Of a stretch of DNA of 64,000 bases, positions 24,617 to 64,000 are shown piece by piece. The DNA comes from Blastocystis sp. Blastoise (Eukaryota > Protista > Bigyra: Opalinata): assembly GCA_039096225.1 (NCBI GenBank), contig JBBPEB010000023.1:686326-750325 (forward strand), given 5' to 3'. The notes beneath the pieces were generated by a model, which saw only the letters and a list, made by a program, of their open reading frames with translations, was not told where the DNA came from and ran no database searches. Within the stretch, counting starts at the first letter, position 1, and every line of letters begins with the position of its first letter. Both the position numbers and the translations under genes were made by a program.

Positions 24617-26102
24617 TTTTTAATTTTGTTCTTAAAAATTTTAGATTAAAATTATGAATTTCAGAATTCTATTATTATAATATATAGAATTTTTTTTTTC
24701 ATTTTAATATATATATATTATTATATATATATTATTATATATATTTATATCAATATAGATTTCTATCTTTATATCTATTTTTATATTCCTATTTATGTGT
24801 ACAGTTCTTTGTTATCTTGTCAGCTGATATTTTTCGCTTTTTATATACATATCTATATATATATTTATATATCTATATATATTATTATCTCTATATTTAT
24901 ATAAATATCTATATCATTATATATATTCTTATACTCTTTCGTTTCTTTTTGTTATTATATCCTATATTTGTCATTATGTTTATAATAATTCATTATTATT
25001 AATCAAAATTTTTCTATAGTTTTTTTATATATGTATATATTTTGAATTTTATTTCTTGATTTTAATTTATTTTAAATTTTTTTTTAAATGTTTTAAATTT
25101 CTCTTTTTATACAGAACTAGTATTATGTTTTTTTATTAAAAATTCCATATAGCTATTTATTTATATATACAAACATGTATATAATAATTTAACATTATTT
25201 TCTTGTATTTTTCATTCTTTCTTTTTTTTTAATACTAATAATAATTTTTCAAATATTTTTATCTTTATGATCTTTGATCATATATGTGTATTATATGCAT
25301 TTTTAATAATTAATTATCTTAGAAAATTATATATTTATATTTATATTTAGTACTCCTTCATATCTATTTGTTTACATGTTTAACGAATGTTTCTGAATGC
25401 TTTATTTTATTTTTTTTTGCATTATTTATTTTCAGATCATTGATGGATCGTTGTTTTGTTGTTTTAGGAATATTAATACTCTATTAAAAACATATTTATA
25501 ATGTATTAAAGAAATTATTTATTGATTTCGTTTATTGTCACAATAACTATTCATATTCTATATATACATTTTAATTATTCTTTTTTATAATAAAAAAATA
25601 TTATGTTTCTATATAAAAGAGACACATATTGATCATAAATATCATAATGTGTTCTATAAAATTTTTCTGAGATTTAGTTAGCAATATAAAGATAATATTA
25701 ACAAATTTATATTGACCTTCTCAATGTATTCAAAGTTGTTCATGAATATCTGAATGACGTTTTGTTCAATCAATGAATATATTTTGATGAATAAAATAAT
25801 ATACATGAATAGTATGATACTATCATTTAAAAGAGATTTGATTTCATAATAAACGAATTATATTTATAGATAAAACTAGATAAGAAATCTAAATTGAAAA
25901 AAAAGAAAATTTGATAAAAATAAGTTCAAAAACCGTGGAGATATTTGATTTTTTGGGGTATTTATTTATATTATTATTTTGACGGTTCTAGGCGTGTATA
26001 CAACACATAGAGACAAGGAGAGTTTGTTCATTCCATTTTTTCTTTCTGGAAAACGCTTTTGATATTGATATAGATATTCTAGAGTTCTTTACTAAGATAG
26101 AA

Positions 26103-29100
26103 ATGGGATATATAGATGATAGTTATCAAAATGATTCAGAAATCACAGAAGCTGATTGCTGGACTGTAATATCTTCATTTTTTGAAGAAAAAGGTCTTGT
26201 TAGTCAACAACTTGATTCTTTTGATGATTTTATGAAATTTCAAATTTCTGATTTAGTTACAGATCAAAGTCGACGTAAAATTGAAATCACATCTACAAAT
26301 CAATATACGATGGTTAATAATGATTATCAAGGTTATAAGCATCAAGTTTTATATGGACATATTTCTATCCAATCTCCAGTTGTAAAAGAACCTGATTCTA
26401 AAGAACCAACTCTTTTATGGCCTCAATTTGCTCGTTTAAGAAATTTAACATATGCTGCTTCTGTTCTTATGGATGTTACTTATAAGAAAACACCTATTAA
26501 TATAGATGGAACACCTGATGGAGAACCTATTATGGATACTAATGAACGTCAATTACTTTGTAAAGTATTCTTTTTATTATTATTATGATCTTTATTTAGT
26601 TTTTGTGTTTATTGTTGTTATTTTATATTATATTATTATATTATTATATTATATTATATTATTATATTATTATTCTATATTATTATTCTATATTATTATT
26701 TTATATTATTATATTATATTCTTATATTATATTCTTATATTATATTCTTATTACTATATTCTTATTACTATATTCTTCTTACTATATATATAAATAGGTA
26801 CCTGTAATGATACGTTCATGTTATTGCCGTTTAAATGGATTAAGTGCAGATAACTTAGCAGAACAAGGAGAATGTATATATGACTCTGGTGGTTATTTTA
26901 TTATTGGAGGAAATGAAAAAGTATTAATTGCTCAAGAAAGACAAACAAATAATACTGTTTTTGTATTTAAAAGAGATCCTCGTGGAGCTATTTCTTGGAC
27001 TGCAGAAGTACGTTCTGTGACAGAAGATGCGACACGTCCTGCGTCAGTCACAAAACTACTTATGTATATATTATATATATATTATTATATTCATATTATA
27101 TTATTATTATTATTATTATTATATTATTATTATTATATTATATTATTATATTGATATTATATTATATTATATTATATTATTATATTGATATTATATTATT
27201 ATTATTATATATATATATATATATAGGTATTCTCGTAAAGCGTCTAAGAAGATGTGTGAGAGATATATGATTCACGCTGCTATTCCTTCTTTTATTACTG
27301 ATGTTCCTGTTTGTGTAGTATTCAGAGCTTTGGGGTGTATTGAAGATAGAGCCATTCTTGAACATATATGCTATGTATATATATATATATATAATGTATA
27401 TTATAGTATTATTATAATATAAATATTATTATTCTATAGACATTTGATGATATTGAGTTAATGGAGAGGTTTAGACCTTCTTTGGATGAAGCTTCTCCTA
27501 TTGATACTGAAGAAGTATATATATATATATATATATAATGATTATAATATATATATAATGATTCTAATATATATATAGTTAGCATTAGATTATTTAGGTC
27601 GTAGAGGTCCTTCAGAAAAGATTAATCGAGTCGGGAGAATTGCTTTTGCTCGTTCAGTCTTACAAAAAGATCTATTCCCTCATATTGGTACTGAGAAAGG
27701 TGGTTTAATAAATCGTAAGAAGGTATTCTATTTAGGTTATATGGTGCACCGTCTTCTCGAATGTTCTTTAGGAAGACAAGAAGAAGATGATCGTGATCAT
27801 TTAGCAAATAAACGATTAGATTTAGCGGGTCCCTTAGTAGGACGATTATTTAGAACATTATTATATAAGTTTACTACGGATCTCAAGAAATATATGAGTA
27901 AAGCAGCCAATGATACGAAAGGAAATGGTACGGTTAAGATTCTTGGAGGACTCAAGGTATATATATATATAATATATATAATATATTATTATTATTATTA
28001 AACTTATTATATAGTCTAAGACTATCACAAGTGGCTTACAATATGCTTTTGCTACAGGTAACTGGGGAGATCGTAATTCAAATAAACAAGTTTCAGCTGG
28101 TGTCAGTCAAGCCTTAAATCGTCTGACTTTCTCCTCTTCATTATCTCATTTAAGAAGATTAAAAACACCTATGGATACTTCAGGTATATATATATATATA
28201 TATTTATTATATATATTTATTATATATATTATTATTATGGTTTATTATATATATTATTATTATGGTTTATTATATATATTATTATTATGTTTATTATACT
28301 TATAATACTTATTATGTTTATTATACTTATAATACTTATTATGTTTATTATTATGTTTATTATTATGTTTATTATTAAACTTATACATATTATTATAACT
28401 CTCTCTCTCTATATATATATATAGGTAAGCAAACCAAGCCTCGTCAATTACATAATACCCAATGGGGTATGTTATGCCCTGCAGAAACACCCGAAGGAGG
28501 ATCTTGTGGTATTGTCAAGAACTTAGCCCTGCTTAGTTATATTAGTACTGGAAGAACTGTATATATTATATATTATATATACAATTATAGTCTTTTATTA
28601 TATAATATAATATACTAATAATAATATAGTATAATAATAGTAATAATATAGTATAATATAATAATAATATAATATAATATATTATTTATATAGCCTACAC
28701 GTATATTAGAAATCTTACAAGAGCATGGTATAGAAGATTTAGAAGAAATTCAACCTTCTCATATCCCGCGATTAACTAAAGTATTTGTAAACGGTGTTTG
28801 GATTGGTGTTCATCGTAATCCGAATGATCTATTGGGCTGTCGTCAACTGCTTGATCCTGATATTAGTATGATTTATGATATCGCTCAAAAAGAAATTAGA
28901 ATGTATATATATAATATATAATATATATTATATATATATTATATATTATATATATAGTATGTCTGATCAAGGTCGTTGTTGTCGTCCGTTATTTACTGTT
29001 GATGCTGTAACACAAACAATTAATTTGAAGCAGTCGCACGTGCAGCGTTTATTATTGTCTCCAAATGATCCTCAAAAATTAACATTCTCCAAATTAATTG

Positions 29101-39910: not shown

Positions 39911-41506
39911 ATGACTCTATCTTTGCTGAGTAAATTTCTATGGTTTTCAACTATTTTAGTGTTATGTTTTATTCAAAGCAAAACAATTGTAGAAGAACAT
40001 TCTATAGATTTAATTCATTCATCAAATTCAAGTCATACCGTACATATCATGATTATTATGTTTAAAAGTCTTTTTTTTTATAGTATAAAGATTTAGATCA
40101 TATACAAACACACACCAAGTATGTATTTATTATATAAAATGAAAATGAATAATCGAATTTCTAGAAAATGTTTTCACAAAGATGCTAATAATATAATTTA
40201 TCCTTCAGATTATTCTAGATTTTATCAGAATTCATTTGCAGAATATTGGGAATGGCTTTCTAAACAAAATACTTCGAATGTGTTACAATCAACAAATATC
40301 TTATTTCATACTTCTTATGAACCAAATATTGATTATTCTTTTATATTTAGATTTTCTAAAAAGAATAGATTATCTGATATAATTGATACTATACAAGATT
40401 TTCCTGATATTAGTTATTATTGGTTAAATAATTTTACAAAGATTCACAGACAATCCCCAGTATTATATGGTACATATTATATACAAAAGAAACTTTATGA
40501 TTATCAGAATTCATTTGATTGTTCTAAAGCTAAATATATTCTTGTTGGTGTTGCTATATCAGGTATTGGCTCTCATGTTCATGTAATGGGATCTTTATTA
40601 GCAGAAGCTATCAATCACAATCGAATATTAGTTATGATTGATAATAATGATTCTTATTGGATAGAAAAATCGATTTGTACAGAAAATTCATTATTATGTT
40701 ATTTTGAAAATATGAGTCAATGTCAATCTTATATAAAAAATACATATCAACAATTAAGATCTACTCAATATGTTATATCCAATCCTAAAAAGAATGATTT
40801 GAAAACATATGATAATGTTCAATATATATATTCAAATACACAATCTATTACTGTATATGAGTCTAAAAACACTATTCCTTATTTTGTTCAAGAATTTTGT
40901 GATGAATTATCTTTATCTTCTGAAGAATGCTTAGTTTATTGGAGAATACAAGCATCTACATTCATTTCTAGATTAAATAAGAAATTCAGTAGTGTTTTAA
41001 ATTCTCGTTTAAAATTAGATTGTATAAATTGTTTAGATTCTTATGATGTTAATATACATATACGTAGTGCAGATAAAAAGAATGAAATGATTATTCCTTC
41101 TCCTTTAGTATTTAATTATCCAATAAATATTATTCAAAAAATACTTAATAAAAATAAACTATCAATATATATAAATGGTGATAATGATGAAGATATAAAA
41201 ACAGTTGTACAATCTTCTAATAATATATTTATATATATATCTAAAGAACGAAGAGAAAATAAAGATGTATATAATATAATAAAAAAAGAAGATATTGTAG
41301 TTTATTCTTTTCTCAATTTAAGAGAATCATTGAAATCAAGTATTCTTATAGGTACTTATGAGAGTAATTGGATAAGATTGATGATTGAACTTAAATTGAC
41401 AATTGGCTATGGTAGTAAGAGTTTATTCTTTGAAGTTGGACATGGCAATTGCATTACATATATTGATTGCCATAATACAAAGAATACATTTAATCCTGTG
41501 TGGTAA
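39911..41506 (+). CDS. Alpha-1,6-fucosyltransferase-like protein (GT23/FUT8-NodZ clan)
   Basis: Signal exon 39911-40039, intron 40040-40096. Motifs 'DCSKAKY', 'SGIGSHVH', 'IHIRSADKKNE' (cf. FUT8 VHVRRTDK) and 'IGTYESNWIRLMIEL'. Confidence 0.7.
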
Positions 41507-44129
41507 AAACAAACATACATTTAATCAACTTTTATTTCTATCATTTAATTTCTTCTATTAATGTATCATGTATTAATATTTATATGATATTTTTATCTAG
41601 CTTTTATTTAGTATTTGTTTTTTCTATTTAATTTTATAATAATAGTTATTAAAAAGTTTATATCTTTTTTCTATATTCATCATGAATTTATAATAATTAT
41701 TTTTTATATACGATGGTTTTAGTATTAATAATTATTCTTGTATTGTTTAAAGGGTTCTATTTGTTTTTTTTATATATTTTTAAACATATGATTTATTTAT
41801 TAATCTAAAAAAGACGTAAAATCAGTATGAACATCTTATTTTGTATTTTTTATTATGACTAACTGAAAGAAATTACTTTTTTAAGTTGAAAATGAGTTGA
41901 TCTATATTTGAACTTTTTGTGCTTTAGAAACCATGGAAATTTAAGATTCATTTTTTGAACTATGGAATGAATGACGGTAGTGAATATATATATGAAATCA
42001 TTTAGTTTATATAGTTAAGAAATTATTAAAAAAACAATTCTATATATTATATTTAAGCTTATTAGATATAAAACTATTTAAAACATAAAGAAAAAATGAT
42101 TATTTGTAGCTTATTATAATATTAAATATTATTCAAATTGAAATTGAATATATTTTTTGAGTATCTTATAATTATGGTTATATATAGATCTATTTATATC
42201 GAATATTCGATTAGAATGTTTGTATCCATTATGTATTAAAGATATATTCTATTCCTTAGAAAGAGTAACAATGCGTCGTATATAATATAATACTATAATA
42301 TATTTATTATAGTATAATATAATTGGCCAGCTTCTATGAGCCCTTTTTTTATCATATGGAATTGTCGCCAACATTTGTAACAAAATATTTATTTTGTTAG
42401 ATATATAATTTTATATTTTTATTCATTCAACTTATATTCAGCAGAAAATGTCAATAATTTATTGTCATAATAACTATCACAAAAATGAGGAAATATGAAG
42501 AAAAACGAATCTTTATACTTGTCTTTTTTATTACAGAAATGAATAAAAAACTGAGAAAATTACTTTTTTTATGTCTGTATATCTTAGAATTACTTGATGA
42601 ATATTATTTTGTATATATTTTGGTATCAAGTTAGTAAATTGACATAAAATAAAGAAAAAATGTTCATTAAAATGGGAAAATCATGTGTGTTATATATTTT
42701 AAGAAATATATTGATATACTTATATATATCTATTTTTTTATTCATTTTTTTATTATTATATTAATTTATTAATTTATTTTCATGATTTCTAAATATTTCT
42801 TAATGCTTTTATGATATATTTTTATTGAAAGTATTTTTGCTATAAACTAGTTTTTTCTTCAATGTATTAATAATTGTAGCTAATTAAAAAAAACTCTTCA
42901 TTTATTCTTTTTATAGATTTAGATATAAAAAACATATAAAAATGAATAAAGAATAATAAAATGGTATTTTTATTTAATTCTATCATCTATAGCAGCATCT
43001 TTTTTTGTATTATTACTTTAAACACACATTTATTTTTGCTAAACAAATGTCTAGACCATTAAAGACCTATAGTTCATAGAACAGGATCTAAAATTGGTTT
43101 TTGTTTCATTTTTAGGAAATAAAAGATCACGAAAAATTTTGTTACATAATAAAAGTATATTTATATATTGAAAACATGTGAAAAAAGAAAATAATAATAT
43201 ATCTTTTTGTAAAAGATGACTTTTTAAAAGTATTTAAGTGACTATTTTTATCTTTTTGCATTTCAATTATCTTAGAAAGGATCAACTATCTGGGAGAATC
43301 TTTTTTTTATTTCTTTCTTTCTCAAAAAAAAATTAATAAATATATATTTTTGTGTTTTTTATTTGTTGAAACTTTTAAAGTTGATAATGATATTAGAGTT
43401 GTGATGTTATAATTAGATTTTCAAAATAGTATATTGAAAATGTTCTAATTATTATTTATATCACTTTGTGGTACTTTTAATTATTTCAAAGACATCACGG
43501 GTAAAAATAGCATTTTTATCCAATTTAAAAAAAGAATCTAAACTGTTTAAGTAAATGATATGAATAAGTATATTATTTAAAGCATTAGAATTTCCTTTAT
43601 TCATTTGATACAGGAAATGTATTTTTTTAAATAAATTTTTATGAAATTTTACAAAGTTTATTTATTTTTAAATCATAATTTTAAAAGCATAATCCATTTT
43701 TTCTTCATGAATACAAAATATAAAAAAAACAATAAAACATAGAGTTTTTATTATTAAATTATATTTTAATTGTTCAAACATCGAATAAGTTAAAAAAACT
43801 ATTAAAGATATTATAAATAAATAAATAAATAGATTAACTAATATGATTATTATAATTTTCTTATATAATAGCATGTATAATTATATATGTAGAACATATA
43901 TGTGTAATGTTACAAATATAAAGTGATTTTTTGTAAAAGATATTCTTGATTATTTAAAAAAATATATATATACAAAATATCTTTTCGTGTGACATCAATA
44001 TTTATTCTGATTAATCTTATTAATTCAGTTTTTTATCTATGTTTTTATGAAATTTTATCGTTTTTTTTTAATAATTTGATCGCATAAGCATTTTGTTTTA
44101 GCATATATTCTTGTCTTTAATGCTATATG

Positions 44130-44645
44130 TGACGTAAACATTTAATTCTTTATTATTATATGACTTAGCATTTAATTATTTATTATTAATGTGACGTCAA
44201 TATTTAATTATTTATTATTATATGACTCAGCATTTAATTCTTTATTATTGATGTGACGTAAACATTTAATTCTTTATTATTATATGACTCAGCATTTAAT
44301 TCTTTATTATTGATGTGACGTAAACATTTAATTCTTTATTATTATATGACTCAGCATTTAATTCTTTATTATTAATGTGACGTCAATATTTAATTCTTTA
44401 TTATTATATGACTCAGCATTTAATTCTTTATTATTGATGTGACGTCAATATTTAATTCTTTATTATTATATGACTCAGCATTTAATTCATAATTATTATA
44501 TGACTCAGCATTTAATTCTTTATTATTATATGACTCAGCATTTAATTCTTTATTATTAATGTGACGTAAACATTTTGTTCTTTATTATTATATGACTCAG
44601 CATTTAATTCGTTATTATTATATGACTCAGCATTTAATTATTTCC
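44130..44645 (+). repeat. Tandem array 1: 17 units, 30-31 bp period, alternating TGACGT(A/C)A and TGACTCA cores
   Basis: TGAC cores at 44130, 44161, 44192, 44223, 44254, 44285, 44316, 44347, 44378, 44409, 44440, 44471, 44501, 44531, 44562, 44593 and 44623. Spacer CATTTAATTCTTTATTATT. Confidence 0.95.
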
Positions 44646-47600
44646 TTTTTATGCATCAAATATTTTTTTCAGACATAATTTTTGTCACTAATTTTTGAAT
44701 ACTATTAGAATACATTATCCTTTATATGTATTTTTTAATATTTTTCGTAGTAAAAAATTTTTATAGTTTATCTATTCTTGGGATCAACTCGATTTTTCGA
44801 ATAGCATAATATTTTTATGATTACTTTTTGTTTTTTTAAATATATTAAACTAATTTAACCCTAAAACAGAAATTTTATGTGCTTATTGATATCACAGTAT
44901 TATTTATATCAGATAACTTCCTCTTTTGTGACGATTTCCATAACAATAAAAAACAATTGAATATAAAATATATATGTTTATTATTCGAAGGTTAAAAGAA
45001 TATCATAAATTTCTATTATATTTTCTGTGTGTTAATTAAACTTTAAAAGGTAGTGAACATTTTTATAAACAAGCTAAAAGTGAGAGTGAATCTGAAACCT
45101 ATGCTTAAGAAATTGATAATAATTATATATTTTTGATATTTATACTTATAATATAAAATTTAAGAAATTGATTTAATATATTTCATTGATTAACTGTATA
45201 TTTTGGATAATCATATCATACCAAATAACTCAACTGCTTCTTTCCATACTTTCTTTGAGTTTTAATTTTGTTTTTGTTTTCTGTTTTATCTATTGTTTTT
45301 TCTTTTGAAAATATTATGTTATTGTTGAACATAGCAAGATAAGAACAAAAGAAAGCATTCAAAATGTTCGATTATTCTTAAACAATTATGCACATAACAT
45401 TTATTATATATATATTTAGAATTTGTAAATAAATTTTTATATCATAAACATCTAAAAGCGAATATTTTCATATGTTTTTCTATTTCCATCTGAGATAGCT
45501 CTTAAATAATCATCAATGAATAATATATATAAAATAACATATATATATATCGTTTAAAAAATATATATAATCATTTATTTTCCTAATCACACACTCTTGA
45601 CATTTGAAAAGACTTAAATATTTTTATGTTTCTATCAAATGAATTAATCAATAATACCAAAATACCATATAGTAACATTTATATCAAAATAAACAGATAT
45701 ATAAAAAAAATTATTAAGTACATGTTTAAAATTGAATAATACAAAATATTTTCCGGAACAATGCTAATTTCTAGCTATTTTAATAATATATATTTTTTGT
45801 AAATTTTGCCCCATAATGGTCTACACCAATAAAATGTTCGTATTCAAAATATATAATTATTATTCTGGACAAGTAGAATTATTATATCAAGTTGATATAG
45901 GCACAAATTTATTAAAAGCAATCCAAATATTTATTATGATTAAACGCTTTATATAATGCTCAGAATTTTCATATTCATATAGTAAAAGCAAAGGCATTTA
46001 AATTATTATTAATAGCAGGCATAAAAAATATATGAATCAACATATTCATATATTCTTAGAAACTACATATTTATTCTAAAAGATATAAAATTCTCCATAA
46101 GCAAAAAATGGAATAGCTAACAATAGAGAATGATGAATACATATTAGTGATAAATGATTTTTTTAGAAAAATTCAAAAAGAATTAAAAACAAGTCTTTTA
46201 TTAAATGATAAATAAAAATAATGATGAAAACGTAGGTTTAGAGGATATTAAAGTATATAGTATAATAATATGAAATACAAACTTAATTCCAAAAAATAAC
46301 ATACTATAGAAATGTTATAAGAAATTAATAATGATATAATTTTTTTTGCTTAATATTAGTTTTTTAAATAGTTTAATTTTTTTAGAGTTCTGTTGTTTGA
46401 TATCATAAATTGATTATGAAAATATATAGCTTAAAAACTTATTTTAAAGTTACAGAAGATGTAGCAATGAGATCAATTTGAATTAGATTTTTATTTAATG
46501 TGTTGATTTGCTATTTCTTTTTATGAGTATTTATTGTATTACATCAATTATGTTATTTTATGGAAGAAACTCAACTTTTGTGGTAATTATAATTAAATAT
46601 TTGACTGCCACTATAAGATAAGTTTGATTGTATTAATACAAAAAAAAGAAGTTTTCCAAAATGTATTTTTATGTCAAATGCTAGATATAAGTCTCAAATA
46701 TTAGTTTTTTTATAGAGAGATTATCCAAACCAGAAAGGGGTAATAACATGTTTAAAAAGTAAAATATTTAGTTTATTTACAATAAAAACACAGCCTTTTT
46801 TGTTACTAGCTAAATATTTTTATTTTTTTTAGAGTATTGGTGAGTTTGGGTTTTTATATATTTTATTACATAAAAAAAATAGATTCTTAATATAAAAACA
46901 ATAAAAACTAACAATAATATAAGTGCTTGATAAAAAAATAGTTCTATTTCTATTATTTAAATATGTATCAAGTATTTTCTTGAATATTTAGATTAATTCT
47001 TTAACATATTTTTTATAATTTTTCTGCTTTTATATTAAATAAGAGAAAGTCACTTATAACCAATTTTAAATAAATGCTATCTTTGAGCTATATATGTGTA
47101 ATTGCATTGTATTGTAATAAACACTTCAAAAAGAAGAAAAATAAAAAACTCAAAATAATATATTTTCAAAATAATGCAAATATACTTGATATACATATTT
47201 ATACACGATTGAGACTTTAATTATATTTTTCTGTATTTCAATTCTTATATTTCAATAATGTATAAGCAATTTGAGTTAGTATTCATAAATATTTTTATAT
47301 ACACTACAGTTTAAGTATATATATATATATATATATATATATTCTAATGACTTTTATGTTGAGATTAGCAAATTAAACTATATACAATTGAAGGATAAAA
47401 CTAAAAAAAATGTCTAAATTATTGGTATTATTAAGCCATCTATTTATTTATATAAACATTATATGCCACTTAATTTTTTAAGAAAAATGATTGGATAAAC
47501 ATTTCGTTTTTGCCAGTATAATAAATTATAAAAAGTCCTTACAGATGTTCTCATATTTTTGTGAGCAGTGTAGAATGACAGCAGAAAACAGCCTATTTGA

Positions 47601-48239
47601 CAATGGAAAAACCAACAAATAGTGTCGAAAATGATGGAGATATTGTCATGCACGCGTCAATCATAGGTTGTGTTTAATATTAAAAAAGCTTATACATATG
47701 CTTTCTATTATATTACAAGCTATTTTAAAAATTATGCGTTTACAAAACACTTGGCTATAAATAATTTGCTGAAAATTTTTTTCTCCAAATTAGAATACCA
47801 TAAAAATATCGTTGTCACGTTTTAAAACTTATATATATATATCTATTTAATAAACAAATAACATTTAATGTTCATACATAACTATAGCTATGTTTTTAGT
47901 TCAAATAAGAAATTTTCTCTCCAAGACACACAAATTTTTTTTTATCGAAAATATATATTTTCTTCATAAAAATCTGAAATCGTTTTTGAATCTTTAAAAA
48001 ATTAGAATAGTTGCATAAAATTTCATATATATTATTTATAAATGTAACAACTTGTTATAAATACAAAAAAAATTATGTTTTTAATAATATATTGTTTATC
48101 GTTTAACTAAATCATTATATATATATATATTTACTAAAAAACTAACAAATTATATACAGCTTCAAAATCAATTATTATTTCATAAAAGGCTACTCTTTGT
48201 AATATTTTTTGACAAAATATTTTGTTTAAATATTGTATA

Positions 48240-48932
48240 ATGAACTATTCTTACAGAAGGTATGATAATAGTATTTATATCTATTATTACTTTTATGATT
48301 TATATTCTATTTAATTAATTTATTCATTATTCTTTAGTTTGGTATTCATTGTAATCTTGATTATAACATTTGTTCCAATAGTGACGAGAGTTTTTCAAGT
48401 TAATTTTTTTTTTAATTCTTTAGGTAAAAATTTTTCTTCTCATTATTTAAATAATTCTTTTTTAAATAAAACTGAATTCAAAATGAAAGTTTCACACAAC
48501 AATTTTCATCCATTTGTAATCAATTCAATCAATGAAACAATTTTTTTTCATCCTTCTCTTATAATTGTAATTAAAACAAAGAAGATAACAGAAAAAACAC
48601 TTGAATTATCATTATTGAATTCTATTCATATTAATCGTCAACAAATATTTATTATTCAAACAAATACTCAAAAAGAATATCAATATTTTCCTTATGAATC
48701 TACAATCTGTTCTAATATTTCATTTCCTTATTGTATTTACACAAATTATGATCAAACTGATAATTTTTCATTCTTTTTATCTATTTTTTATCCTTCAGAT
48801 TATATTTTATTTATAGATGAAGATCAATTAACTTTAGATATTAAAGAAAAATTAACTAATGAATGGCTTTTTAATGCTATTAATTCTATTGAAAATAATA
48901 ATATTAATTTATTTTCTTGTTCTTCTACAATT

Positions 48933-49007
<75 letters not shown>

Positions 49008-49172
49008 TTAAATGAGAATAATATACAATTAAATACTTGTTTATTAGTTAAACAAGGATTAATTAGAAAAATATTATCTTATACATCAATTAATAAAAAT
49101 ATTATGAATGTAATGGATTATATTCCTTATTTCTTTCAAATAGAAAAGAAAACTATGTTTTATGATTCATTT

Positions 49173-49205
<33 letters not shown>

Positions 49206-50072
49206 AAAATTATTCATCCTTCTATTCTTCCTCAAATATTTAAATGTATTTATAATAATGATAATAAAAGTGATAATTCACTTACTTTATTATTACCTAT
49301 ATATAAGAGAATAGCTTCTTTAAATGTACTAAATCTAATAGAAAATCAAACAAAGAAACCAGATATAATAGTAATATTACAAAATTTACATTATATAGAA
49401 TTTCCAAAAGAAGCATTTTTAAATCGTACTATGCCTACTTATTATATATGGTGTAGTAATTGGAATAGTAAATATCATATGAAAACATTTTTAGCTTCTA
49501 TATTTACTACAACATTTGCAATGACAACAGATGATGATTTTTATATTGATGATTATAATGCTATAAATAATATTCTAGATTTATTAAAGAAAAGAGAATG
49601 CATGTATGGTATTACAGGAGGATTAAATTGGAGTAATCTAAAAGGTAAAAAATTCTTAAACCTGAAAAGAACAGATTATATAGTTGATCATGCTGCAGTT
49701 ATAGTATTTTTACGACCAAGAATGTCAAAAATTAATATGAGATATAAACAAGCTACTTATGACTATGGTGAAGATATTAGCTTAGGTGCTATAAATTATT
49801 TAGAATGTAATACAACTAGTCATAGGAATAGCTTTCATACTCATAATCATTCAGGTGACCAATTTCGAACTTTTGATAAGAAAGATAATACGATGAATAC
49901 AAATAGTTATAAAAACATATCTCTCCCAAAATTTAAAAATTTATTCATTAAAATGAATTACGAACAAGTGTATAAATATTATATAAATATGGGATATAAA
50001 AGCTATTTCTACCGAATAAATAATGAAAAAGTTGAAAAAATTTATGATGGAAGGTTGCCTATTAAATACTAA
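48240..50072 (+). CDS. GT-A fold (GT2-like) glycosyltransferase, type II membrane; paralog A
   Basis: ATG at 48240, intron 48260-48337, hydrophobic anchor. Motifs 'LTLLLPIYKR', 'AMTTDDDFYI' (DxD) and 'YGEDISL'. Clearly similar to the genes at 57117 and 62075. Confidence 0.7.
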
Positions 50073-52203
50073 ATATTATTATTCTTCATAATTTGTGTTC
50101 TTAAATAGAATTAATAAGAATTATTCAAAACTATATTTTTACAAATATATTTTTTATGATGTTTCATATAACTTGATAAGCCTTCAATAATTTCCTTTTT
50201 ATTTATTTATTTATATAATTTTAAATTCGTTAAAACAAACTTCTTATCACACAAAATCTTAATATATATGATTCATAATTTTATGAAAACTTTGCTATGG
50301 TTATTTTGACTTTTATTCTGTATATTATAAAACAAAAAAAAATTATATAATTATGTATTCCAAATATTTTTTATAAAAATTGTTTTGATAAAATAGAAAT
50401 TGCATTTGTTTTACAAAATATAGAAATGATATTGTAAAAAAAAATCAAATAATTTATTGCACATATAATTTATTTATAATAATTTTACAATCATATATTT
50501 TTCTGTATAGTAAAAGAAAAGATTTAATTATTTTAGACTACTTGAAAAATATTTAATAATTTTTATTCTTGTAAAAAAAGTACTTATTTAGTATCACAAC
50601 ATTTTTATCGTTGTTTATTTTTATATTTCACACAATATTCAATATTTTAAAATGTATATAATTGCTTTTTCCTTGCAATATATATAATATATATAATATA
50701 TATATATACTATTATACTAGATCTCTTTTCTTAAGTTTTTTTTGTTCATGAATTGTCACATATATCTGTGTTATTTTTTATCAATAATTTAATGCTATTT
50801 TTTTATATTAATCCATATTAAATCTGACTTCAAATGACTTTTTGTGAAATTCATTGCAACTATCTAAAAATATAGGGAAGACGCTGATTAAAATTTTACT
50901 AAATAATGCTGAATATTTATTTCACCATAGGATACTAAGCTTATTTAAGATTGTTCATGTGCTTTTTAACAAAAACTATTAATTTTCTTTAAAAAAAATG
51001 AGTTTAAAAAAATGGTATACAAAAGAAATATTCTCAAAAACAATCAGCCAGAAACTAAGTCGGTATCATTTTTTTTTAAATTTTCTTTTAATATAGTGAT
51101 AAATGATTTTTTAACTCTATGTATTTCAATATTCTTTATTAGGATATATATATATATATATTTTATTTGATTTTTTTAACATTAATAGCTTAGAAATGTT
51201 GACATATATCAATTAAAAAGTGTCAAAAGTTTTTCAAATTATGTGTAGACATATTATAAAGCAAATGAACTTACTGGTAATGTTTATATCAAGCAAAAAA
51301 AAACATACAGTCTATTTTTCAATAGCAAAATTTAACAAATTTTTAACAAATTGAAAAAACAAAAATGTCAAAAGATACAAAAATCTGAAACTTGATTTTA
51401 AATTTTGTTTTACTTAAATAAAATGTATTTTTAATTTATTTTATTTCATGATATCTTTTTTATTTACGAAAAATATATTATGGTATATGTTATATTTCCT
51501 TTTCTTTATATGACTTAATTGATTTCTTTATTTTAGAATTAAATATTTTTATTTTCAAAAACTTATTGTATTTTAAACAAGACTTATATTCCAAATGATC
51601 CAATTAGATCAAAAATACATTTTGTATCAAGTTATTTTGCCAGTTTTATTTATTTATTTACTTTTAGTTAGATTATTAATTATTATTTATGGTGTTGTAT
51701 TTCTTTTGTATTGGATCAACTATTGTGAATGTATATTTTTATTAATTAATATAATCAATAACTTGACAACATTATATGATATCTGATAAGAAATAACAAA
51801 AAAAATCAGTCTTTTTTATATGACTGAATAGAATATAAATGAAAATTTGATTACCAAAAGAATAAAAGGTGTAACAATTTCTATGATATTTACTCTCCAG
51901 CAAAAAAACATAGAGAAAGACTGTGATATTTTAATTAAAAAAGAAAAAAAAATCATTACTTATCCTATAGCAAATTTTCTATGGAAAAAGAATAAAAATA
52001 TAAAATAATTATTATAAATTTATATTTTTATATAAGGAATAAATGAAATAAAATCATGAATTTTGTTATATTTTTTTAGACTTTTACATATATAATACAT
52101 ACATATTTAAATATAAGAAACAAAAGAGTGGTGGCTATTTTTATTCTTTTTTCTATAAAAATATTTTTGATTTTATTATTTATTCATAGATATATTAATA
52201 GCA

Positions 52204-53783
52204 ATGTTTTATCTTTATTATGTTCTATTTTTTGGAATAATGCTATTTTTATTATATTTTCATTTTAATATGCAAATGTATTCTAACAAGAAAATGACAA
52301 TGAATACTTTTGCGCAATTAGAACATAGTAACTTATCATATTACGTAACTATGAGTGTTAAAAATACAAAACACAATTCATCTGAATATATAGAATCATT
52401 TCGACAATATTCAAATGACGATTTTCATTTTCAAGGTATTGATTCAAATAATAAGATTTTATTTCTTATATGAAACTATTATTATAATTGTATTAATCTA
52501 TTATTATTTTTTTTATATTTTTAGAATTCAAAAATTATTATGAATGGGATTATGATGTAATGCAGTATTATATTGATCCTAATAATACTTCATTTGAATC
52601 TTTTTTTGAATACTATAAGACAGTTCAAACAAGATGTGAGAACAAAACATTATCTAGAAATATTATTGTTTTTGAACCTACCACCTCTGGAATGGGTAAT
52701 AAGCTTTTAGGTTTATCATTAGCTATGTACTTTGCTATGATGACTAATAGCCACTTTATGAGTATGTAATTATATAATGTAATTGAATTTTTTTTTTTTA
52801 ATTATATTTCTTATATATTCTATATTTTGATCCTACTATTACTAAAGTTGTTTTATTTAAAAAATGTTTATAAATATAGTCTGTAATTGGCCTTCTTTTC
52901 CATTCTATTTCAATTTATCATTTCCTATAACTGTTACAGGTTGTAAAAGTATACATAATAATTATTAATATTATATATATATATAACTTTTTAATAATAA
53001 TTAGATGAAATTTGATTTCTATATATAGAATTAAACATTTCTAAAACTATATACTATACATCTCCATGTATAAATCATGGCAATGCTATTTTCCCTCCTT
53101 TATCTACATTATTTAATACTTCTTTAACAAGAATAACAATAAATTGTGGTGTAATCGATAGAATTCAATTGAGTAATCATATGAAAATGTTCCTTAATCT
53201 ATATAATATTAATAGTAAAGAAAATAATCGTGTATTTATTAGGAGTAGAGTTTTACATAATTTTTTAAATTATATGATATATCCAAGTAAGTATGTAGAA
53301 GATTCTATTAATGAGAAATATAAATCTTTTTCTTCTTATGATACAATTGGTATTCACTTACGTTTTGGGAAATATTCAGATTTTAATAAAACCAAAGATA
53401 AAAATGATGTATTCCTAATTCCTTCAGATATTGATTATTTTATTTCAGTAGCAAAAATAATATCGAAAAGAATAAAAAGTAATAAAATAAAGTGGTATAT
53501 CTCCTCAGACAGCACATTTTATAAGAATCAATTACAGCAACAATATCCAAACCAAGTTATTACTCTTAATACCACAGTTATTCATTCTGGACTTTCCTCT
53601 ATAACTGGCTATTCTAATGGTGTTGTTGATTCTATTTCAGAAATGTATTTGTTGTCCAAATGCAAATATATTATTCGTTATTCAGAAAGTTCATTCAGTT
53701 CTATTTCTTGTTCTCTTAAAGATGATGAAAATTGTGTCATTGTATATAAGAATAAAAAAACAAATAAATTAACATTTAAATAG
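52204..53783 (+). CDS. Fucosyltransferase-like protein (GT11/GT37/NodZ-type GT-B fold)
   Basis: Signal anchor. 'SGMGNKLLGL', 'IGIHLRFG' (motif I), 'WYISSDS' (motif II) and 'EMYLLSKCKYII...SSFS' (motif III). About 4 exons. Confidence 0.8.
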
Positions 53784-56019
53784 AATATTTTTTTATTTTA
53801 AAGATGATTGCGTATTTTTAGTCATAAATTTATAGATAGATTTGTACATTTTTTTTATAAATTATTATAGAGTTTTCTTATTATTATTTTTCTGGTATGA
53901 TTTTTGATAATTTACAAATATCTATTTTTATTTATTCTTAAACAATAATGACTTTCCGATATTTTTAACATTCTACCTTATTATGATCATTCTTTTATTT
54001 TTATATCTTGATTATTTGAGCTATTTTTTCTATTATTTATTAACTCACTAATTCTAGTATTGCTTTTATTGAATTTAGTAACAAAAAAATAATAACACTT
54101 GGTAAATGAATCTAGTCATAATTTATAGTATTCTTATTTATTAATAAATTTAGTTTTTTAATTATATAATTGTTATTAATCTTAATAAAATGAAACTCAA
54201 TTATTTGAAAAATAGTTAGGGAAATGCTAGTATAATTTCTAAGATATTTAAGAAGATTTTTAATATGTAATATTTTTATTAACTCAATAAAGAATAAAAA
54301 ATTAATTATATAAATGTTTAAATTAGTAAAATATAATTTTAGATTATTATATATAATAAACTTAAGAAAACAATATTCTAGGTATTTAGAAGTTAAATTA
54401 GATAAATAATATTTTAAAATTACTGAAAGATCTGGGAGTAGTATCACGTCAGCAATACATTATTTGATTTTTATGTGGATTCCAGAAATTTCTAAAGAAT
54501 TTTTGGGTAGTGGTTTTTGCATTATTTAAAAGTCCCCAAAAAAATATATTCGTCTCTTGTATCGAAAAAAAAATGTGTATTTTATATACAATGCCTTTCA
54601 AACTGTTTGTGACACTTGATGTGACTGTCACAATAAGACAATTTCAATCAGAATTGATATGACTGATCATTAAAAAATTTTATTTCATTGTTAACACTTC
54701 TCAAGAGTGTCACAAATAATGTGGCACTTACTATCAAAAAAGAAACTCATAAAAGAGACAACTTAAGAATATAAATATAAACATAAAGATGTTCTACATT
54801 CAAGTATAGTTTTTAAATAGTACATTTATAAATATAAATATCTAATTTCTTATTATAAATATTTAATAAAATAACATTTAAAAAGTAAGATAAAAAATAT
54901 AAACTATTATAATAAATAAATATAAAAATAGAATAATTTAATTACAATAATAAAAAATAATTATTATAAAACTATTATAAATACACAGTTAAATTTACAA
55001 ATAGAACATAAAAAGTACTTTAGAGAATCAGAAATCCTTTTATGCTACAAAAAAGATTTATTAATCAAATAAAGCGTATTTAAAAAATAATAATATACAA
55101 AAAGTATTTTTGATCTGTTAGGCCATTTAGAATGACATACAATTCAATTTCATAATAGAGAGAGTTACATATCTTTAAAAGACCTGATACCTAAATAAAT
55201 AAGTGAATAAAGTAAAATAGAATACAAAAGATTCAACAAGCCTGAAATGTAGACAATTTACCTAAATAGAAAATGATATAAACAAATTCAATATATAATC
55301 ATTCATCAAGTTCATAAAAAAAAAGTAAAATACCTGGTTTATATTTTTGTTGTTTTCTAGAAAAGATTTTGTTTTAATAAAAATTGACTGTCTAACTTTT
55401 CTTTATGTTTATTAATAAACATAATAAAATAAGTCATTCTATTTATATCATAAGTCTATATAGTCTATTAAATTCATTTTGATACCTTTTTATAAAAAAA
55501 AAACAACATTTCCAAAACACTAATATTAAGAAAAACAGATCAGAAACGAGCACTTTTTATCAAATAAAGACTTTATTGATAGAATATAAATACACAAAAT
55601 TCATATTAACTCTATACGAGAAGAATAAAGAAGAATAGAAAAAGTATTATCGACTTTTATTTATTTTTCTTATATTTTGGATAAATTCCTTCTCTAAACC
55701 ATTTCTTAGAAGATCATTTTTGTAAGAAATATTATTAGACTATATTATAAAATCAACCAATCAAAACTTGTAAATAGACCACCCTGCCTCATATTGTTAA
55801 TTGGGAAACTATATGAAGTAAGAAATACTAATATGAAAAAATGTGTAAGTGCCAATTATAAAATAGTATGAAATGTTTATTAAATAAAAGAATTCAAAAA
55901 TAAATATCACTCCTAATGATATAAACCAAATCAGTATTGATTGATTATTTCATAAGATGTCACTTATATATATATATATATAATACATAACATCAACAAT
56001 TATTGTAAATATTTTTTGC

Positions 56020-56700
56020 TATGTCAGTATTATATTCATTTATTTATTATGTGACATCAGCATAATATTCCTATTTAATTCTGACATAAGCAAAAAATGC
56101 ATATTATTTTGCTGACATCAACATTATATTAGTCTATTTATTAGTGACATCAGTATTATATTAGTCTGTTTATTAGTGACGTCAGTATTATATTCATTTA
56201 TTTATTGTTGACGTCAACATTATATTATTCTATTTATTATGTGACGTCAATATTATATTAGTCTATTTATTGGTGACATCAACATTATATTAGTCTATTT
56301 ATTAGTGACATCAGTATTTTATTCATTTATTTATTGTTGACGTCAGTATTATACTATTCTATTTATTAGTGACGTCAACATTATATTAGTCTATTTATTA
56401 GTGACATCAGTATTTTATTCATTTATTTATTGTTGACGTCAGTATTATATTTCTATTTAATGCTGATATAAGCATTATATTATATATTATTTTGCTGACA
56501 TCAGTATTATATTTATTTATTTATTATGTGACGTCAGTATTATATTTATTTATTTATTATGTGACGTCAACATTAAATAATTCTATTTATTAGTGACGTC
56601 AATATTATATTATTCTATTTATTAGTGACATCAGTATTTTATTCATTTATTTATTAGTGACGTCAGTATTATATTCATTTATTTATTAATGACATCAGCA
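56020..56700 (+). repeat. Tandem array 2: about 21 units, about 32 bp period, TGACGTCA/TGACATCA cores
   Basis: Cores at 56052, 56082, 56113, 56145, 56177, 56209, 56242, 56274, 56306, 56338, 56370, 56402, 56434, 56464 (degenerate), 56496, 56529, 56562, 56594, 56626, 56658 and 56690. Confidence 0.95.
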
Positions 56701-57116
56701 TATATTTTTGTTGATATCTATAGTTTTACAAATCTTTGAATAATAGAACATACAAACATTTTGTATAATTATTTTTAATAGAATGACACAAAATATCAAA
56801 AAAATATGATTATTGTTTTAAAAACATCATTCTGTTCCTTTTTAGGTTTCAATTATCTAAATTTTATTTCTTTATTATTTATATCAAAAAAATCACCAAA
56901 ATTATGTAAATAAAAATTATATTTATTAAGAATTGAAAGGAATTATTTCATAAAACCATTTAATTACTAAATCTATATATGACAAATATTGGTGATACAA
57001 AACTAATGTTCCTTTTATACTATTATACCTTTCAAAGCAACCAGTTTTGCATACAATATCAAACACAATAAAATAAACTTAGAATAATTTGAAAATATTA
57101 ATACTAAGGACGATAT

Positions 57117-58822
57117 TTAAAAACTATATTTACCATCATATATATTTTTTACAGTAATATTACGAACTTTATAATTATATGGAACAAATCCAATTGATAC
57201 ATAATAATGATAGAGTTTATGATAATCTAAGAATTGAATTTTTTGAAGAGTGGATTCACTAGTTAGACGAATATCTTTATATGTTTTTAACTCTGATTTT
57301 TTCTGATTAATCCAGTATTTTGATTTGAATTGATCCTTGTTAGTATCTTTTGTAGGAATATCAATGACATAACTTTTTGTTCCACATTCTATATTATTTG
57401 TTACACTAAAACCAACATCTTCTCCACTAGAATATGTAACTACTTTATATCTAAGAAATATTTTTGCTTTTTCGGGAGTAAAAAAGTATATACATCCACC
57501 ATGATCAAATGATCCATCTTCATTTTTCATTTCTTTTAATGGCTTATAATTAAAATCTTTTAAATAATTAGCTCCATATTTGGCATATATAGCATTATTA
57601 TTGATATTTAACAATGATACTATATTTTGAAAAATGTCTTTTGATTGAATAAAATGATCATCATCATTACTAACAACATATTTTGTATCAAAAATAGAAG
57701 AAGTAAACAATCTAGCATGATATTTCATATTCCAATTTGGAGACCATATATAATATACAGGAAATAAGGAATTAGAAAAAACAAAATCAGGTATTTCCAT
57801 ATAATGAAGACTTTGCTGAAATATTACATAACTTGGAAGAAATGTTTGAATTGAAAAACAATCAATCATTCTTTCAGCTGTATTTCTTTTAAACATAGGA
57901 ATTATTACAGAAATTGTATCTGGTATTGATATATCTGTATAATTACAAGTAAATGATTGTATATCAGATTTAGGTAATTTCCTGTTATAATAAGATTTTC
58001 TTAAGAAATTATTTATTTTAATATTTTGTTTCTGATCTTTTAAATAAGAATAAATAGTATTCATTATTGAAGAAGATTTAATATTTATTGTTGTATATGT
58101 TAATAATTTACGAATCCATTTTTGTTTTATTATTAAACATCCTGATAATGATTTATTATCATTATTTTCTGATATTATACAAGAAAATAAATCGATTTGA
58201 TTGTTTTCTAATGAATATATTGTTTCATCTAACCAATTTGATGTCATTTGATTCTGGATTTGAGTATTAATTTCATTTTCATTAATATAAAATACATAAT
58301 CTTCTTCATAATAAATAGATAACATGAAAGCATAATGATCTAAATCATCATAATTTTGAAAAATACAATAAGGAAATGAAAAATCATTACAAATTGTATT
58401 TTTATAATTAATAGATGTAAAATTATTGTTTTTATCTGTTCGAATGATAAATATTTGATCAAATAATGATGTTCCATTATAAAATGTAGTAATATCTAAA
58501 GTATTTGTAGTAATATTGTTAGTTTGAATGACTAATGCTATTTTCTTTTCAAGCTTCACTGATTGAAAACTATACAGTTATTATAGATAAAATAATGATA
58601 CTTTTCTTTGGAATTCTGACTATGTAAATTATTTAGTATTATTTTATTTGCATTGTGTACTATATATAATAATTACTTATGACGCAGAATCTTTACACTT
58701 AACATTTGATGAAAAAGGTTTAAATATAACACTGCTGATGATTATATTTATTATTTCACATAGTAATAATAGCCTATACATTCTAATTGTGTTATATAGA
58801 TTAAATACCATAAGATGTACAT
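57117..58822 (-). CDS. GT-A fold (GT2-like) glycosyltransferase; paralog B
   Basis: Long exon 57117-58567 with 'ISVIIPMFKR', 'VVSNDDDHFI' and 'SGEDVGF'. Small 5' exons, including an 18-nt micro-exon at 58602-58619, can be spliced in frame from ATG 58822 to give a hydrophobic N-terminus. Confidence 0.7.
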
Positions 58823-62074: not shown

Positions 62075-62951
62075 CTAAAATTTATATTTACCATCACCAA
62101 CTATTTTTTGGGTCAAGTTAAGAATCTTATAGTTTAATGGAATAAATCCAATTGACTTATAATAATGATAAACTTCCTCATATGATTTATATTTAATCAA
62201 ATCTAGAGTAGATATACTTGAAAGTCGAATATTTTTATATGTTTTGAAATCAGAGGGTTTTTGAGTAATCCAATAACGAGAACGATGTTCATCTTTATTT
62301 GTATCTTTTAAGGGGAATTCAATTGTACGACTCTTTGTTCCACATTCTATATTATTTGTTGTACAAAATCCTATATCTTCACCATATGAAAAAGTATATG
62401 GTTTATATCTTAGATAAATCTTTGTTTTTCTAGGAGAAAAGAAATATATACAACCAACATGATCATAACTATTCTCATTACTTTTATACTCTTTAAGTGG
62501 TTTATTCATAGGGTCTCTTGTATTAAAGGTTCCATATCTTCCGTATATAGCATTATCTTTATTTAAAACAGATGTCGCATTTTTAAATGTGTCACCAGAT
62601 TGAAAGAATTGATCATCATCAATGGTAACAACATATTTTGTATCAAAAATTGATGAGAAATAAAGTTTGGCATGATATTTCATATTCCAATTTGGAGACC
62701 ATATATAATATACAGGAAATAAGGAATTATTGAAAATAGAATCAGGTATTTCTATATAATGGAGACTTTGTTGAAATATAACATAACTTGGAAGAAATGT
62801 TTGAATGGAAATTGCTTTATATAATAAATAATAATTACTTCGTTTAAACATAGGAATTATTACAGAAATACTGTCATTTTGTTTTAGTGGATCATTGTCA
62901 CAAATGAAGGATTCAATTTGAATATTTTTCATTAAAAAATGATGATTTTTT
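62075..62951 (-). pseudogene. 5'-truncated GT-A glycosyltransferase (paralog C), cut by the terminal repeat
   Basis: Strongly similar to the C-terminal 60% of the 57117 gene. It lacks the anchor and N-terminal domain. The frame stays open (L-K-N-H-H-F-L-M...) right up to the repeat junction at about 62952. Confidence 0.75.
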
Positions 62952-64000
62952 AGGCCAGGGCCAGGGCCAGGGGGCCAGGGCCAGGGCCAGGCCAGGGCCA
63001 GGGCCAGGCCAGGCCAGGGCCAGGGCCAGGCCAGGCCAGGCCAGGGCCAGGGCCAGGGCCAGGGCCAGGCCAGGGCCAGGGCCAGGGCCAGGCCAGGCCA
63101 GGGCCAGGCCAGGCCAGGGCCAGGGCCAGGCCAGGCCAGGCCAGGGCCAGGGCCAGGGCCAGGGGCCAGGGCCAGGCCAGGGCCAGGCCAGGCCAGGCGG
63201 GCCAGGGCCAGGGCCAGGGCCAGGGCCAGGCCAGGCCAGGGCCAGGGCCAGGGCCAGGGCCAGGGCCAGGGCCAGGCCAGGCCAGGCCAGGGCCAGGCCA
63301 GGCCAGGCCAGGGCCAGGGCCAGGGCCAGGGCCAGGGCCAGGCCAGGGCCAGGCCAGGCCAGGGCCAGGGCCAGGGCCAGGGGCCAGGCCAGGGCCAGGC
63401 CAGGGCCAGGCCAGGCCAGGCCAGGCCAGGGCCAGGCCAGGCCAGGGCCAGGCCAGGGCCAGGGCCAGGGCCAGGGCCAGGGCCAGGCCAGGGCCAGGCC
63501 AGGCCAGGGCCAGGCCAGGGCCAGGCCAGGCCAGGCCAGGCCAGGGCCAGGGCCAGGCCAGGGCCAGGGCCAGGCCAGGCCAGGCCAGGCCAGGGCCAGG
63601 GCCAGGGCCAGGGCCAGGGCCAGGCCAGGGCCAGGCCAGGCCAGGGCCAGGGCCAGGGCCAGGGCCAGGGCCAGGGCCAGGGCCAGGGCCAGGCCAGGCC
63701 AGGCCAGGCCAGGGCCAGGCCAGGCCAGGCCAGGCCAGGCCAGGCCAGGCCAGGGCCAGGCCAGGGCCAGGCCAGGCCAGGCCAGGCCAGGCCAGGCCAG
63801 GCCAGGCCAGGCCAGGCCAGGCCAGGCCAGGGCCAGGCCAGGGCCAGGCCAGGCCAGGCCAGGGCCAGGCCAGGCCAGGCCAGGGCCAGGCCAGGCCAGG
63901 CCAGGCCAGGGCCAGGCCAGGCCAGGGCCAGGCCAGGGCCAGGCCAGGCCAGGGCCAGGCCAGGCCAGGCCAGGCCAGGCCAGGGCCAGGGCCAGGCCAG
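62952..64000 (+). repeat. Terminal G-rich repeat (CCAGGG/CCAGG)n, probably a telomere
   Basis: About 1.05 kb of mixed 6-mer and 5-mer units with the G-rich strand running 5'->3' to the window end, following a gene-sparse multigene-family region. Confidence 0.8.

Follow-up and report, generated by a model that had tools for sequence, protein, structure and literature searches.

A gene-linked family of minisatellite arrays with CRE-type cores in the genome of Blastocystis sp. Blastoise

Blastocystis is the commonest eukaryote of the vertebrate gut, and its cis-regulation and chromosome-end biology are almost undescribed. Here we analyse two tandem arrays in a 64,000-nucleotide stretch of the Blastocystis sp. 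Blastoise genome (contig JBBPEB010000023.1, positions 686,326 to 750,325 of the forward strand; this whole stretch is called the window below), together with their relatives in the rest of the assembly (33.3 Mb in 34 contigs, the window's contig being labelled C32). Each array unit starts with a core of the cyclic AMP response element (CRE) or TPA response element (TRE) type. At least ten such arrays occur in the genome, most of them a short distance beyond the 3′ end of a glycosyltransferase (GT)-like gene. They very probably form one gene-linked family that was spread by duplication, is not defined by telomeres and does not reside inside a transposon. The two arrays and the gene beside the second are as follows.

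44127-44643, plus strand: array 1 (member A of the family), 17 units, each 30-31 bp long, arranged as a 62-bp higher-order repeat, with no close GT-like paralogue adjoining
56023-56706, plus strand: array 2 (member B), about 21 units mostly of 32-33 bp, with 64- and 96-bp higher-order repeats and TGAC[G/A]TCA cores
57117-58706, minus strand: P0001, a GT-like gene that includes a short 5′ exon and is annotated as encoding a hypothetical protein (493 aa); founding member of the array-carrying paralogue family

The two window arrays

A sequence-only reading of the window had reported two tandem arrays that share core, strand and a period of ~31-32 bp, and Tandem Repeats Finder and our own reading of the sequence find both. 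The program gives array 1 a period of 30/62 bp (16.4/8.4 copies, 84-91% matches) and array 2 a period of 32/64/96 bp with up to 20.9 copies. Unit heads in array 1 alternate between ATGTGACGT[C/A]A and ATATGACTCAG, which produces the 62-bp higher-order repeat and cores of the forms TGACGT[C/A]A and TGACTCA; the counts are three TGACGTCA, four TGACGTAA, nine TGACTCA and one TGACTTA. Array 2 has ten TGACGTCA cores, nine TGACATCA and one TGACATAA. The spacer is T-rich on the plus strand in both.

The window has a G+C content of 20%, its last 1 kb excepted, and beyond the arrays its remaining 61.7 kb hold no TGACGTCA (0.14 expected). Core clustering in the arrays is thus far above chance, though tandem arrays inherently multiply their own motif. 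Chance or low complexity as the origin of the arrays is ruled out by this count together with the Tandem Repeats Finder result.

The TGACATCA variant occurs 17 times family-wide, against about one occurrence of its mirror form TGATGTCA. Since TGACATCA is tied to the 96-bp higher-order repeat of array 2 and its mirror is rare, its abundance points to amplification of one mutated unit, and not to recurrent CpG deamination, as the probable source.

Unit structure and descent

Units from all loci align with one another. Their consensus is TGACGTCAG[C/T]ATT[A/T][A/T]ATT, after which comes an AT-rich tail finishing in TTTATTAG or ATG, and the 18-bp unit head common to the arrays, TGACGTCAGYATTWWATT, consists of a CRE/TRE-type palindrome of the kind bound by basic leucine zipper (bZIP) proteins plus adjacent bases. 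Units measure 30-34 bp across the family and number from 2 to 21 per array, head to tail, and the tail evolves faster than the head. Array-to-array identity is 72-88%. Short flanks are common as well, the last unit running into ...CATATATTTTTGTTGATATCTA in arrays B, D and I. Altogether the arrays contain 51 TGACGTCA and nine TGACTCA cores, with 17 TGACATCA and four TGACGTAA variants; array D has a perfect TGACGTCA in 16 of its 16 units.

The sequence-only reading held that the two window arrays differ in spacer, and that keeping motif and phase without the spacer implies selection. The first statement was too strong: the spacers align, and array 1 and array 2 are 72-73% identical by BLAST. Because the spacers are homologous, common descent is enough to account for the core, phase and strand that the arrays share, with no need of selection. 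The period, described in that reading as about three turns, is no more than the inherited unit length, which ranges over 30-34 bp in the family. From their alignable head-to-tail units, well within the 10-100 bp usual for minisatellites, we conclude that the arrays are one minisatellite family by descent that arose once; the higher-order repeats of 62, 64 and 96 bp and the range of copy number imply turnover by unequal exchange.

Conservation was profiled from a segmentation of the units that was not anchored on the core. Core half-sites are conserved at 85-93%, the AT three and four bases past the core at 90%, and much of the tail at 41-57%. Of the first 13 unit positions, 12 are identical across all five sub-groups, and the tail differs. 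The head (core plus ~10 bp) is therefore better conserved than the tail, so this part of the earlier reading stands.

Genome-wide census

The genome was searched with triple-core and double-core CRE-type patterns, each with a reversed-pattern control. Three CRE-type cores at 29-34-bp spacing gave 69 matches in the genome, against 0 in the control, and the double-core (two-unit) search revealed one extra small array, J; the reversed triple- and double-core patterns gave 0 and 2 matches per strand. A looser search for three TGAC at 30-33 bp was nonspecific overall (115 matches against 168 in its control) and added no CRE-type array. BLAST also matched the arrays weakly to about 30 further contigs; these matches proved to be AT-rich noise lacking cores. 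The arrays thus form a family, as had been supposed from the two in the window, with at least ten loci: two on C32, three on C16, four on C21 and one on C4. They are listed here with the distance to the nearest contig end and, where there is one, the adjacent close paralogue of P0001.

A, C32:730.5k (window array 1): 19 kb to contig end
B, C32:742.3k (window array 2): 7 kb to contig end; paralogue C32:743445
C, C16:30.6k: 31 kb to contig end; paralogue C16:34080
D, C16:61.9-62.4k: 62 kb to contig end; paralogue C16:58506
E, C16:2102.6k: 61 kb to contig end; paralogue C16:2099841 (pseudogene)
F, C21:1045.2k: 109 kb to contig end; paralogue C21:1048635 (fragment)
G, C21:1080.6k: 73 kb to contig end
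H, C21:1135.1k: 19 kb to contig end; paralogue C21:1138568
I, C4:2502.8k: 8 kb to contig end
J, C21:1035.3k: 119 kb to contig end; paralogue C21:1038709

Perfect TGACGTCA sites number 207 in the genome, and 51 of them fall within ~3.4 kb of arrays. Outside this genome, a metagenome scan with the two-unit pattern found four unrelated GC-rich contigs with repeats of 14-17 or 33 bp starting TGACGTCAG[C/T]ATT, a likeness that is probably coincidental and imposed by the search pattern. The same pattern had no match among the viral contigs scanned.

Linkage to a GT-like gene family

Array 2 lies 411 bp past the stop codon of P0001, on its downstream side. A six-frame search of the genome with P0001 found ten loci, pseudogenes included, that are close paralogues with an identity of at least 46%. 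An array lies 0.4-3.4 kb beyond the 3′ end in seven of these ten, and equally seven of the ten arrays are so placed; the T-rich strand of the array keeps a fixed orientation relative to the gene in 7/7 pairs. The suspected link between the arrays and a GT-like gene family is borne out by these figures.

Other members of the gene family, and a second kind of sugar-transferase gene, occur in the window at these positions.

48339-50072, plus strand: distant paralogue of 577 aa between the arrays, 32% identical to P0001
53169-53783, plus strand: NodZ-like exon (alpha-1,6-fucosyltransferase family; PF05830, 34.5 bits against a cut-off of 28.3)
62075-62932, minus strand: 5′-truncated close paralogue, 62-63% identical to P0001, adjoining a satellite and with no array downstream

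The name "glycosyltransferase-like" is reasonable but weakly supported for P0001. The protein has no Pfam match, and P0003 matches Glycos_transf_2 below the cut-off (E 0.0097). Language-model features in the Atlas place P0001 at 0.96-0.97 to GT2/GT64 clusters, and its predicted structure reaches template-modelling (TM) scores of 0.41-0.49 over the C-terminal half. The nearest Atlas cluster (TM 0.70, 119 members) is labelled Nucleocytoviricota, which may denote either giant-virus relatives or AT-rich protist contigs that were binned as viral. A protein search with P0001 returned seven proteins, six of them annotated as Blastocystis sp. Blastoise and one unlabelled that is encoded in the window; close GT-like relatives in the protein searches came only from, or apparently from, this genome. 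One further match was on an unrelated pig-gut contig of 36% GC without arrays.

According to the sequence-only reading, the arrays bracket a cassette of 11.4 kb that contains a GT-A and a fucosyltransferase gene. The contents of this block are partly as described, since the NodZ-like exon exceeds its cut-off and the distant GT-like paralogue is present, but the GT-A assignment is weakly backed. The bracketing itself fails. Array 2 pairs with P0001, which is outside the block, and array 1 has no such gene: it sits in a gene-poor stretch of 6.8 kb without long reading frames, among short dispersed repeats, and no remnant of a GT-like paralogue was found around it (41500-48400 examined). The block was not found elsewhere as a repeated unit bounded by arrays, and its bracketing is incidental.

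Mosaic flanks

We compared 600 bp on each side of arrays A-I, adding BLAST between loci; the available flank sequence spanned ~1.5 kb at C, D and F and a few hundred bp at G and J. The left flank of array 2 belongs to the first class below.

55794-56022, plus strand: left flank of array 2, 86-90% identical to those of the arrays at C16:62k and C4:2503k

Left flanks fall into the classes {B,D,I} (86-99%), {C,H} (97-100%), {F}, {E}, {A} and {G}, and right flanks into {C,H,F} (77-100%), {B,D,E} (leading into the gene), {I}, {A} and {G}, with all other pairs at a background of 45-60%. The two sides assort independently: D and I have the left flank and the array in common and not the right flank, F matches C and H by its right flank only, and E matches B and D by its right flank only. 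In three independent comparisons homology stops at the array or within ~35 bp of it. Breakpoints at arrays had been proposed as a signature to look for, and within this genome homology between paralogous loci does repeatedly end at an array edge. Such independently assorted flanks suggest that arrays served as junctions of exchange or duplication, although any dispersed tandem repeat could yield breaks of this sort.

Paralogue groups that are only 63-65% identical in protein keep their arrays, though the flanking non-coding DNA no longer aligns. An array kept beside genes so diverged, with 12 of 13 head positions agreeing, speaks for either constraint on the unit head or exchange between arrays. 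The distribution of unit variants follows the flank groups, which is evidence against a recent homogenisation.

Chromosome ends

The arrays had been placed 18 kb and 6 kb from the telomere. Those distances run to a satellite at the end of the assembly, which is not a demonstrated telomere.

62952-64000, plus strand: irregular (GGCCA/GGGCCA)n satellite that extends to the end of the contig, not a canonical telomere repeat

The telomere repeat of this genome is TTAGGG, which has 2,568 18-mer matches and forms the physical end of C16; a junction-type pattern finds it at about 13 contig ends (C3, C4, C13, C14, C16, C17 twice, C19, C25, C26 twice, C31). A pattern search for the satellite found two genomic sites only, the window end and C22:67042-67813, the latter interstitial with unique AT-rich sequence on either side. 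The two-site distribution, one site being interstitial, and the TTAGGG caps exclude the satellite as the telomere, and they make it doubtful that the contig end is a healed break to which a telomere was added.

A subtelomeric role was the main proposal of the sequence-only reading: the arrays would be a silencing family, or recombination hotspots like the fission-yeast M26 site, that controls or shuffles GT cassettes delimited by array pairs. In its favour, none of the ten arrays is more than 119 kb from a contig end, five ends on four contigs being involved. About 22% of the genome is within 110 kb of a contig end, giving p ~6e-4 for five independent ends. Four of these ends are assembly breaks without a chromosomal placement, and one pair or more represents a 98% duplication. 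The link to the GT-like family and the homology blocks that stop at arrays also fit the proposal, and genuine precedents for it exist in the Atf1-Pcr1/CRE hotspots and the SPE2/SIP2 arrays (PMC2396409, PMC2829057).

Against this, the window end is no telomere, and the only telomeric end that bears an array is the right end of C16, where array E is 61 kb inward. Of the ~13 TTAGGG ends in the assembly, about 12 lack an array on the same contig or within 2.5 Mb, so a general subtelomeric element is not what these arrays are. Orientation follows the gene and not the chromosome end, and array pairs do not bound the 11.4-kb block as a repeated unit. The M26 analogy fares no better: the heptamer ATGACGT has two occurrences on both strands of nine arrays and none in the two of the window. 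Meiotic hotspots would, moreover, need a sexual cycle, and none is known to be established for Blastocystis. We regard the subtelomeric proposal as unlikely.

Dispersed repeats

Repeats of other kinds adjoin both arrays, and this raises the possibility that a transposable element family carries them as its internal minisatellite.

54768-55800, plus strand: dispersed non-coding repeat R, ~1 kb, beside the left flank of array 2
42038-42794, strand not assigned: short dispersed repeats resembling miniature inverted-repeat transposable elements (MITEs), with dozens of genomic copies, in the gene-poor stretch that holds array 1

At least 17 copies of R, 72-76% identical, are scattered over at least 11 contigs. 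The copies share the 3′ end ...CCACCCTGCCTCATATTGTTAATTGGG and are truncated to different extents at the 5′ side, and R looks like a retroposon of the non-LTR (long terminal repeat) or short interspersed element (SINE) type. MITE-like pieces lie on either side of array 1. The dozens of other copies of these repeats, those of R included, carry no arrays, however, since arrays occur at ten loci only. Only within paralogue groups do array loci have similar flanks, and no transposon domain, transposase or reverse-transcriptase reading frame was found near the arrays. R is also missing from the homologous left flank of D and I, which means that it was inserted later. On these grounds a position inside a transposon is rejected, and we give it hardly any weight.

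Two inverted copies of R flank the cassette of array E on C16. In the gene-poor stretch, array 1 lies between the MITE-like pieces, which are separated by 4.5 kb, as against ~0.3-0.6 kb in other copies, and the piece at 47274-47346 has a matching perfect palindrome of 27-32 nt at ~47316-47346.

A viral or Polinton-like context was considered on account of a family-B polymerase fragment near array E and rejected, the fragment being most similar to cellular DNA polymerase alpha. At C16:2095516-2097153, 65 kb from the C16 telomere, exons matching the catalytic subunit of DNA polymerase alpha break off at the start of a copy of R; they may be a truncated duplicate of the housekeeping gene in a repeat-rich region.

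Candidate binding proteins and possible function

A profile search found five bZIP_1 domains over the Pfam cut-off in the genome, at C16:1337k, C21:181k, C26:669k, C28:79k and C33:496k. Their basic regions are of the NR(V/E)SAR(E/Q)SRRK type (NRVSARESRRKRK, NRESARQSRRRKK) or read NRESAHRSRARHK and NREIARNCRKRK. Among stramenopiles, the bZIP modules of aureochromes are reported to bind TGACGT (PMC4937327, PMC5812316). By this analogy it is plausible that bZIP proteins may bind the arrays.

The scheme that we favour starts from a single origin of the array, in fixed orientation and a few hundred bp to 3.4 kb past the 3′ end of a GT-like gene that is specific to this lineage. Array and gene then spread together as duplicated segments to four contigs, close to five of their ends. 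The arrays would be multimerised landing sites for one of the bZIP proteins of the genome and may act as a 3′ regulatory or chromatin module of the adjacent gene; what suggests a landing site is that the unit head is kept where the surrounding non-coding DNA no longer aligns. Taken as a whole, a gene-linked family with putative multimerised bZIP sites is the best explanation we have, and we would give it an even chance. Its functional half, that protein binds the arrays and that they work as a gene-linked module, we put a little short of even.

The chief competitor is that the arrays are neutral passengers, a minisatellite that arose by chance next to the ancestor of the GT-like genes and travelled with its duplications, with no binding role for the core. 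Common descent accounts for core, period and orientation, and breaks at array edges would be no different from the non-allelic exchange of any dispersed repeat. Core variants move with the higher-order repeats, and copy number runs from 2 to 21. Three close paralogues are without an array (C21:1059975, C8:2282645 and the truncated C32:748403) and three arrays (A, G, I) without an adjoining paralogue or detectable remnant, which would be losses and orphans on this view. The richness of the genome in low-complexity repeats suits it as well. What the passenger view explains less well is that arrays persist at 63-65% protein identity while flanking non-coding DNA has fallen to the 45-60% background, and that the first positions of the unit are constant over the five sub-groups and the tail is not. 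We give it a real but minority chance.

Several observations weigh against a functional, gene-linked module, beginning with the unpaired genes and arrays just named. Array-to-gene distance varies about eightfold. Beyond the arrays TGACGTCA is only ~2-fold above expectation genome-wide. The core centre is the most variable core position (61-67%, central G 61%), several spacer positions match the core in conservation, and the 17 TGACATCA, nine TGACTCA and four TGACGTAA are spread inside higher-order repeats as neutral variants would be. Since the arrays were found by their cores, the apparent conservation of the core is inflated. This genome is also rich in low-complexity repeats (~12%): tortoise Blastocystis isolates have long intergenic regions and about that share of low-complexity sequence, in a report that is silent on telomeres and on CRE-core arrays (PMC10690189).

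A bolder version, in which the arrays would be multivalent bZIP platforms that switch the chromatin state of the GT-like family and channel ectopic exchange between its clusters, seems improbable to us. If true, it would parallel the SPE2/SIP2 system with bZIP proteins and might allow a gut protist to vary its surface glycans. Should the arrays be a conserved bZIP-site module of a simpler kind, the 18-bp head offers a probe, and the five candidate factors a starting point, for studies of gene-family regulation and rearrangement. Even as mere passengers the arrays would still mark duplication history and assembly breaks.

Comparison with known systems

CRE-type sites in short tandem repeats are familiar from the cytomegalovirus major immediate-early enhancer (19-bp repeats) and the HTLV-1 LTR (21-bp repeats). 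Like these, the Blastocystis arrays have tandem TGACGTCA or TGACG-type sites at short constant spacing in a genome that encodes bZIP factors. They differ in reaching 21 copies, in lying 3′ of a cellular gene family and in belonging to an AT-rich protist.

The M26/CRE sites of fission yeast are bound by Atf1-Pcr1 and act as recombination hotspots and in heterochromatin nucleation (PMC2396409, PMC9775316). The arrays resemble them in having a CRE-type core and in coinciding with the edges of homology blocks, but most array units read GTGACGT or TTGACGT, and M26 sites are single and not arrayed. In Plasmodium falciparum, SPE2 arrays are bound by PfSIP2 (PMC2829057). Here too a protein-binding-type motif, putative in our case, is repeated in tandem in connection with a multigene family near contig or chromosome ends. 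SPE2, however, is a bipartite motif bound by an ApiAP2 factor and lies upstream of var genes, in telomere-associated repeats at most chromosome ends, whereas the Blastocystis arrays are downstream of their genes, have another motif and are lacking, on the contig or within 2.5 Mb, for about 12 of the ~13 assembled telomeres; the likeness is one of analogy only.

With ordinary minisatellites the arrays share a unit of 30-34 bp, 2-21 copies, higher-order repeats, differences of copy number between paralogues and breakpoints of non-allelic exchange. Unusually for neutral minisatellites, they have been kept beside old paralogues and have a conserved 18-bp unit head.

Other observations

No Rfam family or tRNA was found in the 38-64 kb part of the window. 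On C14 a second TTAGGG tract lies at 25751-26713, ~26 kb inside the contig and in addition to the terminal one; it represents either telomere repeat in an interstitial position or a join in the assembly. A telomere-adjacent sequence unrelated to the CRE arrays is common to C4:1302-1345, C16:2162295-2162338 and C29:6737-6780, at 1.3-6.7 kb from the ends. Near array I, at a distance of 2.6 kb, a gene on the minus strand of C4 (2497807-2500143) encodes a 778-aa acidic low-complexity protein rich in Ser and Glu.

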